The notes: generated by a model not told the origin, from the letters alone. Numbered from the stretch's first letter, positions 1-37,793 are shown. The stretch is DNA of 43,024 bases from Polymyxa betae A26-41 (GCA_003693705.1 RBZT01000414.1:1-43024); one strand, 5' to 3'. Translations and numbers: made by a program.

Positions 1-527
1 CATGGTGATGCTGGTTTGACGGGTCGTAAAATCATCATCGATACGTATGGAGGATGGGGCGCCCATGGTGGTGGTGCTTTCTCAGGTTCGCTTCTTGCTA
101 TCTTACTATCTCTTGTCTTATGGTTTGGTTTCAGGAAAAGACCCGACTAAAGTTGATCGATCTGCAGCTTATGCCGCCAGATGGGTTGCTAAGTCTTTAG
201 TTGCTGCTGGCCTCGCCAAGCGTGTCATAGGTTCGGGTCTCGCCTTCTTATTTCAAGCTCCCTAATATTTGTGGAACAGTGCAATTATCTTATGCCATTG
301 GTGTGTCTCACCCGCTTTCCGTTTTCGTCGATTCGTACGGAACCGGTGTGAGATCTGATGAGGAGCTGCTCAAGATCGTTCAAGATAACTTCGACCTTCG
401 TCCGGGTGCTATCATTCGCGAACTTGATCTCAAACGCCCCATCTACGTTGAAACGTCTGCCTATGGACATTTCGGTCGAAGTGAGAAGTCTTTCACCTGG
501 GAACAACCTAAACAGATGAAATACTAA
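1..527 (+). CDS. metK: S-adenosylmethionine synthetase, 3' part (5'-truncated by window). Exons <1-85, 135-230, 280-527
   Basis: Spliced translation [55 protein letters not shown]...VQLSYAIGV...[26 protein letters not shown], containing the MAT signature GGGAFSGKD. Two 49-nt GT-AG introns (86-134, 231-279) restore the frame. Confidence 0.97.
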
Positions 528-1668
528 ATCGATCTATAACATTGTTGCTTATAAATCTATAATTGCCATTCTCTTAACTGCTGGCTTTAAGAAATGTGCC
601 CTTTTTGTTTCTGTTCCAATGGAACATCTAGGATCACCGCTGAATTCGGGAGCCGTTACGGTTAACATGAATTGGTAGCAGTTCGATTGGGGCAGTCCTC
701 CTTCGACGGAATGGAAGTCTGAGAGGGCGATGTTTTAATTTCTGCAATAGAACACCTATCAATGTTCCGCGCTGGTAGACTTCAATTTTTTATATAATTT
801 TGACGAATTGAACAACTTTAACGTCGTCCAGGCGCTTGGCTGATTTGCTTACGGTGTAACATTATCACATCATCTGTGTGGGCGCAGCCACTTAAACGAC
901 ATATCGTTTAAATAACAAGAGCAGTTCCTATTTGGAGAGGGATACCACATTAACCATCCAATCGCCACCCCAGTTCACGAGGCCATCAGCAGTATGTCTC
1001 TGCTTGGAGGTTTAACAGCAAATAACCATGCTATAGTGAATGCATTCGTGGAGAAGTATTTCCAGCATTCCCACCAGAAAGTCTTAGGCATCATTGGCGG
1101 ATACACGGCTCTTTATTGTCAGTCCAAGTCTATTTCTTTATTTCTGCAACGTCTTTTCTTTAACTTAATTTAGAAAGTCTGTCAATCTAATGCTCACATT
1201 TCGCTAGACTTGGTAAAGTCCTTGAAACCGACGAAGGCGCCTGTTCCAGCATCATCACCATCTCAACCGTCTGGAGCTGGTTCTAAATACGGCTTCGAAA
1301 TTCCAACTTTGGAGACACTCGACGTAACATTTTTTTATTTTCGTAGCAGGATGTTCATTGATTGTTTCTTTATCAGCAATGGGCTGCAAATGAATCCAAT
1401 GTCAAGGCCTGGGAGTCCTGGATATCTAAGCCCGATAGCCTCAACGAGTGGGCGAAACAATTCGAGAAGTAATTTTTGCAATAAAAGCCCATCGAGTCCA
1501 ATGGTAACATTCTACACTGAATTGAATTGTCTCTTTTGTGATGGCCTTGACGCCATCTCTAATGTCATACAATCCTCCATCATACGCGGAAATATTCATG
1601 AATCTTTATGCATATTTAACTGATTGCTATTCTTGCAAGATACGGGCGGCTTTGAAATGCTAGCACGT

Positions 1669-32279: not shown

Positions 32280-32934
32280 TTAAGCCATAACTGCCAGCAA
32301 CATTAATGCCATTGTGGCCGCTGAGACAGAAACCGTCAATGCCGAGCTTCGCTGTGACTTGGGAGTGCTTTCAGGGGCTGAGGTCGACGAATTGTCCATG
32401 TTCTCCATGGCCATGTTGTCCATTTCTGGCAAGCTACTAACGGAGGCAGCCGGTGCGTCATTCCATCCCGCGATCCCACAGTAAAATGAGGCGACGAAGG
32501 TGAACGGGCTCTCATCAGGCAGGCATTCTCGTCCTTGCTTGTCGACAGGGTAGCCTAAGATCTCTTTGGTGACAGTAACAGGGCATTTGTTGGATTGGAG
32601 ACAGTAGCGCTCCATGAATTCGGTGATATCCAGAGTGCATTTCGAGTGACGTTTAATTGCAGGGCATCCTCCTGGGTTTTGACCCCAAGCGGCCGCCTTC
32701 ATCTTCTTTAGAATGGTCCCGGCTGGGCATTCCAACGTGATCTTCTTATCACCCGGATTCGTCTCAGCGCAGACTCCAACAAGCTTCTCGTCGGACGTCG
32801 CCGTCGTTGTTACATTTGAAAGTGCTGAAACTAGAGATAGTGCCGATATAGCAACTGCAAACAATTCAGGAATCGCGAATATAGACTTGATGAAGCTTAC
32901 CAATGATGGTGACAGTTTTGCTGAATAGAGCCAT
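32280..32934 (-). CDS. Secreted, probably GPI-anchored protein with SUEL-type (galactose/rhamnose-binding) lectin domain. Exons 32934-32901, 32854-32280
   Basis: A 46-nt intron gives signal peptide MALFSKTVTIIVAISALSLVSA. Eight-Cys pattern C..ITLECPAG....AAWG...GGC...C...C...C...LG...C...YC, a Ser/Thr-rich stalk, and C-terminal SSA plus a hydrophobic tail. Confidence 0.78.
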
Positions 32935-34580
32935 GACGTGAAAGTTAAACGTTCGTGTATAGACTTTGCAAATAATAGGTTCGAAATAGGGTTAAATTCC
33001 AGAAGTGAGGATCATGGTCTATAGTGACTCCTTCCTCAGTGATGTAAAAGTCATGATCAAAGGGCGAGATGACTCAACTGATCATGTCGCTCGAGTCTAC
33101 TCCCATCGTCAATGAATTGCTGATTGCAAGCAGAAGGGTTCAATAAAGTGCCAGGCAGGAGGTAGCCCATAGACTTCCCATGTTGTTGGGTTCCTTTTGA
33201 TGTCAAAAGTTGCATTTGAAACATTACAGAATAAAGAGACCAGGCGGTCAAAGAAGAAAGAGAGATGTTCTAGAAAAGGATATTGATATTTGGATGATCC
33301 GATGACAGTTTAGTGAATTCACTTCAATCTCATACGCGAATTAGTTCAGTCTGAATGAATCAATCAGGACCACATTAATAGCTCAGATTTCACAAGAGAT
33401 TTTCACTGTCTCTCGGACGATCGCTGATAAAAAAACAATATCAGGCGGGCACATTATACGCCTTTACCTTTTTCTATCGAATTTAGGCTACAAGCCCTAT
33501 AACAGGGACGAATTCGTCAATCAGAAAAAAGTCGGACGTTTACGTGAATGCCTCTGGGCTCTACTCAGCTTCCTAACGAAGCGATCAAAATACTTTTGAA
33601 GAGAAAATATCTGCTAGACGGCTCTCATGAATGGGCGTTCAAAGGCGTCGAAGCTCATGCTACCGACAACGACGTGAACAAGGAGTTCGCAAACGCCAGC
33701 GAATCAGGAATTCAAGATGATGAGGTTGATACGGTTAAAGAAGTCAGTGAAGCCGCCATAGCGTTGATAAAAATGAAAAGTTCTCCAGGTAAACCGAAAT
33801 ATCAACTACTCTGAATCGACTAAATCTGTTCAGTCGGAGGGCATCGTAAGCGATGGAAGTTGTGCACGCCGCCCCCATTGATTGTTTTGCCACCGCGACA
33901 ATGTCAAACTCTTCTCCCGGAGCATGACAAGCAGATGGTTCAAATACGATGTGCGCCCAGGCCTCGTCGTTAACGAATACAACCCATATTCAAAACTGTC
34001 GTTCTCTCATTGCTCGCGTCGTCGGCAGAACTCGCCTTCGAACTTGCTTAACAGCTGTCTATTAGCTCCAGTGACTATGATAATGTATAAATCCATGACG
34101 AATCCAATCTGTCGACTTCGTTTTTGTTAGATACCATTCCATCGTCGTTTCTCGTCTCATTGCTGAGAGCCCAGAAACACCAGACCTTGAAACCATACCG
34201 ATCTGATTGTGAAACCATGTCAACCACCACCCTGACGTCGGGCTTTGTAAATTGAAGCTTTCAGGGATCATTTCAGCAATACTAAATCGCAAGGAGCTTT
34301 CGCAAGCACTGAAGCAGGACCTTTCGTCACTTTCCGAAGTGCAAACAGATTCGTTGCGTCAACCGCAGCAGACCTATCCGTTCAACAAGGAGAGCGACGT
34401 CATAAACATCGCGAAGAACTATTGTCATTGTGGGCAGAAAAATACTAGCTCTTCGCTTGCCAATAGAGACCCATTAAAAGGCTCTGACCGAAACAGTAGG
34501 CGATGTGCGATCCAAAAAGCTAGAGAAGGAAATGTCTCAGTTGTATCTACGACCCGATATTTCAGAACTGATAACGGTCT

Positions 34581-34886
34581 TTAAGCCAAGTTGGTGGCAG
34601 GTCCACTTGCAATAAGGCGCTCCCGAAGGCTGTCACGAGTCATACACAAATACAGGACCTTGATGTGAGTCCAAAGAGTATCGAAAAGAAGCCAACCCAA
34701 ACCGAAGCTGATAGCCCCGGTCGCAACGTAGACGCTGATATCATATTCCCTGCTGTTCGGATGATAATCAAAAATTTCCGGCACGAATAAGGTCAGGATG
34801 CCTCCGCCCAATGAGAGTATCGCGATGAAGAGCGATTTGAGAACATTGGTACTGAAGAACCAATCCAGTCCCGAAAACAGACCCAT
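34581..34886 (-). CDS. Small two-TM membrane protein (101 aa), partner A of head-to-head pair
   Basis: ATG-initiated intronless ORF with two ~20-aa hydrophobic helices. Aligns co-linearly with the 35074-35373 product. Confidence 0.7.
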   Translation of the reverse strand: MGLFSGLDWFFSTNVLKSLFIAILSLGGGILTLFVPEIFDYHPNSREYDISVYVATGAISFGLGWLLFDTLWTHIKVLYLCMTRDSLRERLIASGPATNLA

Positions 34887-34887
34887 C

Positions 34888-35060
34888 GCTGGATTTGCAA
34901 AGCTTTATGGCGACGGCGATAATCTTCAAATGGTGAAAAGACACGGCGACTTGATCTGCCCGATCGAAGATTATGAATTTGGAAAGAAGCGATCGAATAT
35001 GGCCGATCGTCTTTGCACCGTTGAAGATTATCGCCGCCGCCATAAAATTTACAAATCAGC
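34888..35060. promoter_or_regulatory. Imperfect ~55-bp inverted repeat, putative mirrored bidirectional promoter
   Basis: Arms at 34888-34942 and 35009-35060. Perfect 16-bp core CGGCGATAATCTTCAA (34914-34929) / TTGAAGATTATCGCCG (35021-35036). A third GAAGATTAT lies at 34966-34974. Each arm sits just upstream of one ATG. Confidence 0.7.
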
Positions 35061-35073
35061 TAAAAAAGAAGCA

Positions 35074-35373
35074 ATGGCACTCCGACGACAGCCGTTTCCA
35101 TCGATGAATCGCTTCTTCGGGGGCGACATCAAACGCTCGCTGACGTTGCTGGTGATGTTCTTCGCGACGTCGATCGCTTTGGCCATCACATCCCAGCAGT
35201 TCCCGAAGGGCTCGTTCCAACATGAGCTGTGTCTACAGACGGGCGGGATCTCTCTGCTCTGCGCCATGTTCGTGTCGGCGTTCGACTTCTTCTGGATGAT
35301 TGGCACCATTGTGACACTGTTTCTCACGACAAACATTCATGCGGACGTTGCTACACCGGCTGCACGACCTTAA
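35074..35373 (+). CDS. Small two-TM membrane protein (99 aa), partner B of head-to-head pair
   Basis: MALRRQPFPSMNRFFGGDIKRSL followed by two hydrophobic helices and FDFFW. ATG 35074 is preferred over 34798 because it gives the same length and upstream element as partner A. Confidence 0.7.
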   Translation: MALRRQPFPSMNRFFGGDIKRSLTLLVMFFATSIALAITSQQFPKGSFQHELCLQTGGISLLCAMFVSAFDFFWMIGTIVTLFLTTNIHADVATPAARP

Positions 35374-35861
35374 CCATGTCTAGTCTTGCCATAAACAATA
35401 AACAGCTTGTGGTTCCTTTCGATTTCTTCGACGACCTTTCAGTTTTAGTTTCAACTTTACATTTTATCACAGAGCTCATCGTTTTTTCATGGCAATCAGC
35501 GGTTGTTTGTCAAGAACGCCTCATTTCATTTCGATACTGCTTTTCCTAGGTCAGGTTAGCCCTGTTTCTTATAATCTATTCACGCTGATTCTGACGATGT
35601 CTCGTTAACAACAACCGCAGTTTCACATAGTGGATGTTTGACAAATGTTGTCGCCGGTGCCAGCCATTGCCATCAGCAATGCAATGCTGACAACATGGCG
35701 CCCATAACGACGCCCGTCGTTTCGGTCATTCCCAAATGGACGGAAAGCGACTTTGGTCCCTCTCAAGCCTGAATCTGACAAGTATGAACGCTCACGAGAT
35801 CAATGTTTGGATCAATGACGGAGCAGGGGGTTCCGCTAGGGTTTCCCTGCCTGAATTCGAA

Positions 35862-36090
35862 AAATCGAATTTTCCCACTTCGTTTTCGTTACGATCGCGT
35901 CGTCATTTCGTATCTCACTGGTGACCGCCTCGGATTTCGTTACCTGTGTCATCTTCTCCATCGTTGCTGAAAGTCGAATCCTCCCACTTCGTTGTCGTTA
36001 CGATCGCGTCGTCATTTCCTATCTCACTAGTGTCCGCGTCGGATTTCGTCACCTGTCTCATCTTTTCTCTACATTGCTAAAAGTCGAATC
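35862..36090. repeat. Imperfect ~109-bp tandem duplication immediately upstream of RRN7
   Basis: TCCCACTTCGTT(T/G)TCGTTACGATCGCGTCGTCATTTC(G/C)TATCTCACT...TCGGATTTCGT.ACCTGT.TCATCTT...TTGCT.AAAGTCGAATC occurs from ~35873 and ~35982. Confidence 0.9.
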
Positions 36091-36110: not shown

Positions 36111-37793
36111 ATGATATGCGATGTCTGCCAGAGTGATCGGCTGACGAAGAATGATCTCGGGTTCCTGATCTGCGATGATTGCGGCGCTCAGAGTTTTGCA
36201 GCCACCCAGGAGGAAAGCGAATTCCTCATGGGTGAGGCGGGCGCTCGAGCGTTGCAACGCGTTCGGAAAAGCAAACCGAATGAGGCGACTCCCAAAGATG
36301 CTATAGCGCCTTTGTCGGTAATTCTGAAGGCGATTCAAGCGTCGCTGTTTGTTCAATGCTGTGCTGCTTCTAATCATTTCGGGACGAAACGTTCCCTGTT
36401 GTTACAAACGGCAGGAGATCTATTCTTAGCCTATTTTGAGAGCGTTCGCCGCGATTATGATGGCAACTTCGAGATCATATTGGCAGGACCTGGGTTAGCT
36501 CATGGCGCTCAAACAACTGGCCAGCTTCCTCAGTTCAAAGTCCATCGTTTTATCACGATCCACATTCTGGCTCTGGCTATGAATCTTATGAGAGAACCCA
36601 TCACACCGTTAGATCTCTGCATTCAGATCCGTGCTGGGAATATTCCCACTCAAGATATCCTCAAGCTATTGCCGCCTGAGATCTCATCGAAACTAACGAT
36701 TCGTCTGTATCGTTTTTTGGCGCAAGGATCGTTTCTCGTATCGCCAGAGGGTTTCACAAAAGAGATGAAACTGATTCACGAACGCATTTGTCGTGTGACA
36801 TCTCTACCTGAGCTACGTCCTGTCTCTGGAAATATTCCTCTGACCTTAACTCGTTATGTGCTTCAGTTGCAATTGCCGATAGAAACAGTAGCGCCGCTAT
36901 CTCATGCATTATTGGTTCTCTATAATAGAAGATCGCCTACCATTTCCAAATCTCATACAATAGCAGCTGTCATTTTGGCTGTCAAGCTGCTTTACGGCTC
37001 GAGGTCTCCGTCCCCTCTAGATTCGATTTTAAGCTCGTCAACTTTCGTGTCCCTCTCCAGGCTTTGCTCTGCCCCCGACCCCGATTCTGCTGATTTTGCA
37101 ACTTTAAAAACCTTCACAAAATCTTTCAACAATTTCACGGTCTACAGTCAAAGAACGAAAATCGCTGTCGGTGATGCATTTGACGATATTTATGCGGTCC
37201 AGTTTCCGGAAGAGGTTTGGGATCTCTCTGAGTATTCTGTCACCAGATCTTATGACGACCTACTAGTTCAAGATGATGGGCGATGTTTATGCTGGTATGA
37301 AGATCCTTCTCGTGGTGGTAACCAGAAGCCAATCAACGTCAATCAACGTTGCTTTTTGAAGGCAGGTGGTAATAACCCTGACATGCCTGAATACAAGAGG
37401 CTTATTCATTACGACCCTGATGAAATGCATAATGGGCATTGTATCGAGCATTATTTGCATCGGCGTCTATTTCAAATTGCCTCTGATATATTTAACATCA
37501 CGCAGCGAGATCTGGATCACGCATATCGGCATATTGTTGAATCAATATACAGGCAATATTCAGGCAAGCTATTCCAGCATGAGCAACGCAAGGATACGAG
37601 GTACCAGCAAATACTTCGACTCAGTCGCAAGCGAGGTAGAGAGCGAATTGCTGAGGACAAAGCAGAACGAAAAAGGTTAAAAGCGATGCTTCCTGCAGAA
37701 ATCAAATGTACGTCACTTGAGACATTACGTACATTGGTCGCCCAACAAAACTACTTGAAATCGTGCATGTCATCGTTATCCACTGGTTCATAA
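36111..37793 (+). CDS. RRN7: RNA polymerase I initiation factor Rrn7/TAF1B-like, intronless, 560 aa
   Basis: N-terminal zinc ribbon CDVC...DLGFLICDDCGAQS and central LAMNLMREPITPLDLCIQIRAGNIP, matching the Rrn7/TAF1B cyclin-fold pattern R.P....DL......G.IP. Confidence 0.72.
   Translation: MICDVCQSDRLTKNDLGFLICDDCGAQSFAATQEESEFLMGEAGARALQRVRKSKPNEATPKDAIAPLSVILKAIQASLFVQCCAASNHFGTKRSLLLQTAGDLFLAYFESVRRDYDGNFEIILAGPGLAHGAQTTGQLPQFKVHRFITIHILALAMNLMREPITPLDLCIQIRAGNIPTQDILKLLPPEISSKLTIRLYRFLAQGSFLVSPEGFTKEMKLIHERICRVTSLPELRPVSGNIPLTLTRYVLQLQLPIETVAPLSHALLVLYNRRSPTISKSHTIAAVILAVKLLYGSRSPSPLDSILSSSTFVSLSRLCSAPDPDSADFATLKTFTKSFNNFTVYSQRTKIAVGDAFDDIYAVQFPEEVWDLSEYSVTRSYDDLLVQDDGRCLCWYEDPSRGGNQKPINVNQRCFLKAGGNNPDMPEYKRLIHYDPDEMHNGHCIEHYLHRRLFQIASDIFNITQRDLDHAYRHIVESIYRQYSGKLFQHEQRKDTRYQQILRLSRKRGRERIAEDKAERKRLKAMLPAEIKCTSLETLRTLVAQQNYLKSCMSSLSTGS

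Follow-up and report, generated by a model that had tools for sequence, protein, structure and literature searches.

Paired small membrane paralogues that act as obligate heteromers are known from the mitochondrial pyruvate carrier, MPC1/MPC2, and from the bacterial small-multidrug-resistance proteins EbrA/EbrB. Root parasites of the plasmodiophorid group (Polymyxa, Spongospora, Plasmodiophora) cannot be cultured, and many of their genes are without known function; one of them, Polymyxa betae, parasitizes the roots of sugar beet. Here, we describe two adjacent genes of P. betae A26-41, hereafter A and B, which are located in a window of 43,024 nucleotides (GCA_003693705.1 RBZT01000414.1:1-43024), that is, the whole stretch of DNA that was analysed. 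Judging from sequence comparison, A and B represent an undescribed family of paired, predicted membrane proteins of about 100 residues, which is kept and copied as a pair among these parasites.

Gene A (101 aa) is located on the minus strand at positions 34581-34886 and gene B (99 aa) on the plus strand at positions 35074-35373, in both cases including the stop codon, and each of them is predicted to encode a helical hairpin membrane protein with two hydrophobic stretches. Coordinates, strands and lengths of the two ORFs as well as the 187-bp spacer between them (34887-35073) agree with an earlier note, made from the sequence alone, which had also described both frames as intact; these frames turned out to be both selected and transcribed. 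The start codon of gene B was set by the N-terminus, which is kept across five members. Pairwise comparisons with the copies found on two other contigs (C243 and L007, see below) resulted in dN/dS values of 0.12-0.15 for gene A and 0.13-0.28 for gene B, with synonymous sites being near saturation in these comparisons. For both genes, pN/pS was lowest in the claimed frame among the six frames, the claimed frames contain zero stops, and substitutions are enriched at codon position 3. We conclude that A and B are real genes under purifying selection that are covered by RNA contigs. Both ORFs are short and a database family is absent, which would be expected if one or both of them were chance open frames in non-coding DNA, but this explanation is ruled out by a dN/dS well below 1, which is seen in the claimed frame only, together with the six-frame comparison; its probability becomes negligible if one also considers that, per family, up to five independent sequences, which are 42-81% identical, retain an intact frame and that RNA contigs cover both ORFs.

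The evidence for transcription consists of unstranded contigs from three runs (X5, X7 and X1), of which X5 and X7 originate from two different studies, and the contig ends only approximate the transcript ends. A stranded raw-read run (X10) is without reads from P. betae. Contigs from X5 and X7 match the window at 100% identity and are RNA-derived, because they contain spliced joints. In these two runs, gene A is covered from 34544 to 34967 at a mean word depth of 42-127 and gene B, starting from 35037 in X7, at a depth of 18-57, with the depth over A reaching up to about three times the depth over B. Run X1 represents a variant that is about 96% identical and comprises separate contigs for A (34533-34899) and B (35011-35349), which are of equal depth (16.9 and 15.6, respectively). 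Compared with the window, this variant carries 11 substitutions in gene A, leading to 4 amino-acid changes, and 6 substitutions in gene B, leading to 2. On the 3' side of A the contigs end at 34553 (X5), 34544 (X7) and 34533 (X1), which leaves the A transcript with a short 3' untranslated end (34544-34580, minus strand, as delimited by RNA contig ends). Since the RNA contigs run through both ORFs without a single spliced joint inside A or B, the two genes are intronless, as had been proposed in the earlier note. One X5 contig extends from 34782, inside A, across the spacer and B up to 35805 and includes a 50-nt intron (35546-35595), the GT..AG borders of which are on the minus strand. Thus, a minus-strand transcript extends over at least the 3' side of B, and part of the RNA coverage over B could be antisense.

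The same contigs contradict the view that the neighbourhood of the two genes is non-coding or decayed, as spliced transcripts were detected at ~32.9-34.1 kb and, on the minus strand, at ~35.4-35.8 kb; in the RNA runs examined, the sole silent part of the flanks is located at 34.11-34.54 kb. The first of these transcripts (32934-34102, plus strand) is very abundant, with a mean word depth of 121 in X5 and 1335 in X7, and contains a 45-nt GT..AG intron at ~33789-33833; the small protein encoded by its ORF, which starts at 33548, matches no Pfam family, and the genome contains no paralogue of it. The minus-strand spliced transcript (~35380-35805) contains a single ORF of 52 aa, which belongs to no family, and begins ~40 bp from the 5' end (35844) of an RRN7-like mRNA contig; because the two starts adjoin, this transcript may originate from the RRN7-like promoter as a divergent, non-coding product. 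The 560-aa ORF at 36111-37793 (plus strand) has an N-terminal zinc ribbon and probably encodes a divergent RNA polymerase I TFIIB-like factor (Rrn7/TAF1B-like); in Pfam it matches the zinc ribbon (E 8e-4) and the cyclin domain (E 0.07) of Rrn7, in both cases below the cut-offs. Just upstream of this ORF, and within the 5' untranslated region of the gene as judged from the start of the RNA contig at 35844, we found a 98-nt direct repeat (35861-35958 and 35970-36067; 89% identity, spacing 109). In addition, a 207-aa ORF at 32280-32903 (minus strand) with hydrophobic N- and C-termini matches the SUEL-type lectin domain (E 1.5e-6) at 28.9 bits, just below the Pfam cut-off of 31.4.

The draft genome of P. 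betae comprises 1,001 contigs with 27,085,946 bp and a GC content of 45.1% (PMC6328671). A second head-to-head cassette is located on contig C243 of this genome, where the gene B copy (B2; L006 1745-2059, minus strand) and the gene A copy (A2; L006 2178-2483, plus strand) are separated by a spacer of 118 bp and encode proteins with 81% (A) and 72% (B) identity to the window copies. Neither blastn nor tblastx revealed sequence shared between C243 and the window outside both genes. Because the flanks are unrelated, C243 is a dispersed paralogous cassette and not a second haplotype, and an allelic copy is ruled out. Profile searches of the whole genome yielded two copies of A and two copies of B, which always adjoin. 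B2 evolves about twice as fast as the other B copies (dN/dS 0.27-0.28), carries an Arg within its last hydrophobic stretch as well as a tail that is 5 residues longer, and may be under relaxed constraint. A third head-to-head pair is present on an 895-bp ENA metagenome contig (L007), with the B copy at 20-319 (minus strand), the A copy at 414-719 (plus strand) and a spacer of 94 bp.

When 1.84 billion cluster representatives were searched in full with the A profile (HMMER), only two true matches were obtained, and the A type comprises only two clusters at 50% identity in this collection. The first protein, P0004, is 52% identical to A and comes from a JGI sample that is listed among wetland metagenomes in a paper; the second, P0005, is 42% identical to A and corresponds to Spongospora subterranea CRZ12078.1. 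With the B profile, a word-based search added two further B-type proteins, namely P0003, which is 61% identical to B and encoded on a Logan contig with a 106-aa gene upstream on the opposite strand, and P0008, which is about 72-73% identical to B. P0008 and P0004 share one 2366-bp wetland contig, on which they are encoded on the same strand, 246 bp apart. This tandem pair indicates that linkage is conserved whereas orientation is not, and also that a divergent promoter is not essential. Both genes are visible in four loci, three of them head-to-head and one tandem, at distances of 94-246 bp, and linkage as well as the 1:1 copy number (two copies each in the genome) are conserved. The search for further copies suggested in the earlier note revealed the second P. 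betae cassette, the pair on L007 and the wetland pair, and of the conserved head-to-head linkage considered there, the linkage held in 4/4 loci and the head-to-head arrangement in three of them.

In a phylogenetic tree, A and B members separate into two clades (100/100 support), the inner topologies of which agree, with the wetland pair placed outside the group of the window, C243 and ENA copies in both. From Spongospora an A-type protein is known, but so far no B-type gene, which counts against the cassette model. Based on these distributions, the family appears to be restricted to plasmodiophorids and environmental relatives. JGI metagenome contigs scanned with B gave no match, and a search of viral contigs added nothing to either family. 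Two candidates were discarded: a JGI metagenome match to A was a false positive, i.e. a 384-aa unrelated protein matching only residues 28-45 of A (67% identical), and P0006, obtained in a profile search, is a 1073-aa tandem-repeat ORF, the score of which was summed from 12 weak stretches.

A database entry for sugar beet also traces back to this locus. The gene B protein shares 100% identity with "hypothetical protein BVRB_032580 [Beta vulgaris]" (KMS93329.1), which is gene B read through the spacer, and the 727-bp beet contig L017 (AYZY01080871.1 of Beta vulgaris GCA_000510975.1) is 99.9% identical to window positions 34834-35561. Because its contig matches the window at this level, the beet entry is unmasked, as a by-product of our analysis, as P. 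betae contamination that was annotated as a plant gene; the match likewise provides an independent confirmation of the window sequence at the locus.

The relationship between A and B becomes apparent only at the level of profiles. BLASTP of A against B returned nothing except a 17-residue off-register match (E 0.61), and a global alignment of the single sequences was marginal (z 3.1, p ~0.01). With families of three and four members, hhalign reported a P of 0.07 and a probability of 0.8%; with five members per family, the score was 27.6, P 2e-4 and the probability 46%, with an alignment of 81 columns at 16% identity that contains one 2-residue gap and has the same register as the hand alignment of the earlier note. 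The missing BLASTP match and the low probability obtained with few members would be consistent with two non-homologous hairpin proteins that became alike by convergence in size, helix layout and a few motifs, but the score rose as diverse members joined. A profile comparison with shuffled controls had been named as a check on the hand alignment: with the layout of N-terminus, helix, loop, helix and tail preserved, all 300 column shuffles stayed below 27.6 (mean 12.5, SD 2.8, maximum 23.2). A control profile with reversed columns scored 20.9, which speaks for convergence, whereas MscL of P. betae, a genuine two-helix family used as a negative control, remained at background (hhalign P 0.86 and 0.62 against A and B, respectively).

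Searches of profiles against single proteins (hmmsearch, Z=1) gave a similar picture. The A profile scored each of the five B proteins at 10.9-12.7 bits, and the top A-type score of the B profile, 15.4 bits, was assigned to the Spongospora protein, the most divergent A member. The window's A, in turn, received only 4.1 bits with the B profile, again as one might expect for unrelated proteins, but scores such as those observed are rarely or never matched by layout-preserving decoys, of which 5 out of 3000 scored ≥10.9 bits, with no decoy attaining 12.7 or 15.4. Among 365 natural ORFs from the window and C243, the best non-self matches of the A profile were both B proteins. Further arguments against convergence are that the matched columns are those conserved within each family and that the predicted helix boundaries fit the alignment register. 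The two families share an FF pair as well as a basic-Ser-Leu motif that precedes helix 1; in addition, one Asp is invariant in 10/10 sequences, with Trp or Tyr three residues later. Taken together, A and B are likely to be homologous, as distant paralogues, with moderate support from the profile comparisons, and a non-homologous origin is improbable. The old duplication with diverged paralogues that had been proposed for this locus is thus probably correct, and the pair is kept at four loci.

The spacer shared by the two genes (34887-35073) includes the putative divergent promoter and both 5' untranslated regions and forms a large imperfect palindrome. Its single-strand fold has an energy of -79.9 kcal/mol compared with -43.9 +/- 3.9 for shuffles (z -9.1), a self-inverse match extends over 172 nt (34892-35057) with 71% identity, and the outer arms share 85% identity over 55 nt; across the spacer, the independent assembly contig L017 is 99.9% identical. 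The best-kept part of this near spacer-wide palindrome is an inverted repeat of 26 nt, the arms of which are 96% complementary and represent the only two copies in the genome at ≤3 mismatches. The left arm (34904-34929) is located 18-43 nt upstream of the start of A, inside the A 5' untranslated region, and the right arm (35021-35046), which carries a 1-nt deletion at 35044 in the X1 strain, is located 28-53 nt upstream of the start of B. RNA contigs reach into the spacer up to 34967 from the A side and from 35011 (X1) or 35037 (X7) on the B side, which places the right arm inside or at the very start of the B 5' untranslated region, and one RNA contig spans the entire spacer. With the arms in both 5' untranslated regions, each mRNA would carry the same sense sequence 18-53 nt before the AUG.

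The spacers of C243 and L007 are without a palindrome (z -0.6 and +0.7), and for this reason we regard the palindrome as a recent, locus-specific rearrangement, which would explain why the upstream element is far better conserved than the genes. For the same reason, the palindrome is ruled out as evidence for the old gene duplication. Between the B-side half of the window's spacer and the A-side upstream region of C243, 77 nt align with 74% identity. As to the origin of the palindrome, either an inverted copy of one upstream half would have replaced the other, or the two halves would have been homogenised; the spacer illustrates a promoter region that was recently made palindromic. An Rfam search of the spacer retrieved nothing. 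The spacers of both P. betae cassettes also share the 15-mer TCGAATATGGCCGAT (window 34993-35007 and G000:C243:12112-12126), for which the genome contains 5 exact copies compared with 0 for the reversed control. We rejected this 15-mer as a promoter element, since the other three copies, on three further contigs, are in unrelated surroundings, within or adjacent to ORFs and not between divergent gene pairs.

AlphaFold2 models built from five-row alignments predict the same hairpin for both proteins. In the A model (mean pLDDT 78), helix 1 comprises residues 2-38, the loop residues 39-45 and helix 2 residues 46-94; in the B model (mean pLDDT 75), the corresponding elements are residues 10-40, 41-47 and 48-92. 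A 7-residue loop is thus followed by a second helix of 45-49 residues, the start of which (A46 and B48) coincides in the alignment register. Lys and Arg are found at the N-terminus (4-6 in B) and in the tail (3-4 in A), and the loop is neutral or acidic. This charge distribution suggests that both ends of A and B are cytosolic and that the two proteins are oriented in parallel. N-terminal myristoylation of A was dismissed, because Gly2 is not conserved.

No described family or fold matches A or B in Pfam, NCBIfam, the PDB (sequences and folds) or the ESM Atlas, in line with the impression of the earlier note that the family was not a recognisable one. For all ten members, the best E values in Pfam-A and NCBIfam were 0.03-0.4 and thus far below the cut-offs, a sequence-profile search of the PDB retrieved no entry for B and, for A, nothing above noise (E 0.04, ABC transporter), and the best scores in the ESM Atlas, 0.75 and 0.79, were below a useful level. 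Foldseek searches with the two models returned no match below E 0.8, and VIA-align produced a flat plateau of generic helical hairpins at Z 7.3-8.8. The top fold matches were subunits of respiratory complexes I and IV, V-ATPase subunit e and WRB/Get1, and the plateau also holds ESCRT-III and other helical hairpins. Based on the models, such matches to small hairpin subunits reflect a common arrangement and not kinship.

We favor the interpretation that A and B would be subunits of one hetero-oligomeric membrane complex, with the cassette balancing their dosage, and assign a probability of roughly 0.55 to it. A duplication, most likely older than the split between Polymyxa and Spongospora, would have given rise to A and B, and the two-gene cassette would then have been inherited as a unit, been duplicated at least once and kept the supply of both proteins balanced. 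A and B may assemble side by side and in parallel into a single complex, with the residues conserved in both families serving as working or packing sites. Candidates for such sites are the FF pair and the basic-Ser-Leu motif before helix 1, a patch of small residues within helix 2, and the invariant Asp with its downstream Trp or Tyr. We counted in favor of this interpretation the linkage in all four loci, the joint duplication and the agreement between the A and B trees, and against it the moderate similarity of the A and B profiles (46%) with the reversed control at 20.9, the unstranded RNA evidence with possible antisense coverage of B, the tandem arrangement of one pair, and the faster evolution of B2 (dN/dS 0.27-0.28) with its Arg in the last hydrophobic stretch.

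The main rival is independent function, in which A and B are real paralogues that act separately, as homo-oligomers or as subunits of different complexes, and in which their adjacency is a trace of local duplication combined with the convenience of a shared promoter. Orientation is not fixed, with one relative having a tandem pair, and rates appear uncoupled, with 52% identity to A for the wetland A-type protein compared with 73% identity to B for its B-type neighbour, both of which would be compatible with separate roles. The RNA data fit both views, as the depth over A is up to ~3 times that over B in X5 and X7, whereas it is equal in X1. What makes us consider separate action less likely is that the genes are linked in 4/4 loci where both are visible and that the sole duplication within the genome copied exactly both of them, as expected for dosage-balanced partners. 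Within the favored hetero-oligomer, a more specific assembly can be envisaged, namely a plasmodiophorid-specific pore or ion-conducting complex built from two kinds of hairpin subunits, in which the invariant Asp at the end of helix 2 would line the pathway. This proposal is speculative and its probability low; if true, it would represent a type of channel or membrane-remodelling complex without described relatives and with a possible tie to zoospore or intracellular stages.

The locus defines a small, well-expressed and apparently lineage-restricted protein family, the genes of which come with a built-in partner. If A and B form one complex, the family would provide a compact model for the origin of an obligate heteromer from a duplicated membrane hairpin, and in addition a candidate lineage marker.

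With regard to described systems, divergent gene pairs such as Dictyostelium tgrB1/tgrC1 and basidiomycete HD1/HD2 have only the two-gene layout in common with A and B, and we found no homology to either of them. The head-to-head layout had led to the suggestion of a self-recognition, mating-type-like or toxin-antidote system. While tgrB1/tgrC1 and HD1/HD2 are highly polymorphic, A and B are under purifying selection between cassettes and strains, without hypervariability, and nearly invariant between strains; neither the dN/dS between cassettes (0.12-0.28) nor the ~96% identical variant X1, with its 4 and 2 amino-acid changes, revealed rapid or diversifying evolution. A second point in favor of a recognition or toxin system would be noise-level matches to bacterial membrane effectors, as 5/5 B members weakly match the two-helix region of the CBASS 2TM effectors (PADLOC 2TM_IV; best E 0.0011, ~16 bits). 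This match is confined to positions 14-77 (64 positions) of a profile of 235, B lacks the long C-terminal part of the effector, no A member matches, and in the whole-genome search the match is gone; moreover, CBASS is bacterial, whereas P. betae is a eukaryote. We therefore regard the PADLOC matches to 2TM_IV, as well as to E2, as transmembrane-composition noise. Because of the purifying selection, the near identity of strains and the conservation of the A type across genera up to Spongospora, such a system is highly improbable, and the suggestion was abandoned.

The large-conductance mechanosensitive channel MscL (PF01741) is, like A and B, a small protein in which an N-terminal helix precedes two transmembrane helices joined by a loop, the first of them Gly-rich, and a charged extension forms the C-terminus; by eye, the first 20 residues of A are similar to P. 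betae MscL. When the P. betae genome was searched with PF01741, three MscL loci were detected (E 3e-28 to 2e-15), whereas A and B were missed even with E values of up to 10 allowed, and together with the background-level hhalign comparison this led us to reject an identity of A and B as MscL. No MscL chain is present among the Foldseek and VIA-align matches listed, but a monomeric hairpin model is too generic to be informative on this point. The MscL-type genes themselves are located at G000:C462:9776-10168 (L012 1411-1899, minus strand), G000:C462:2482-2874 (L013 1423-2109, plus strand) and G000:C824:245-654; both C462 genes encode a C-terminal CxxC...CxxC tail that is zinc-ribbon-like, and one of them has weak matches to Pfam double-zinc-ribbon entries.

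MPC1/MPC2 and EbrA/EbrB thus serve as the comparison for the favored hetero-oligomer. A and B differ from them in having no Pfam match to either family, in their two helices each compared with three or four, and in charges that suggest a parallel rather than antiparallel orientation; and whereas MPC1/MPC2 and EbrA/EbrB are obligate heteromers, the complex of A and B is a proposed one. A and B are like them in being probable old paralogues of about 100 residues, in their 1:1 dosage and in their organisation as adjacent, co-transcribed genes.
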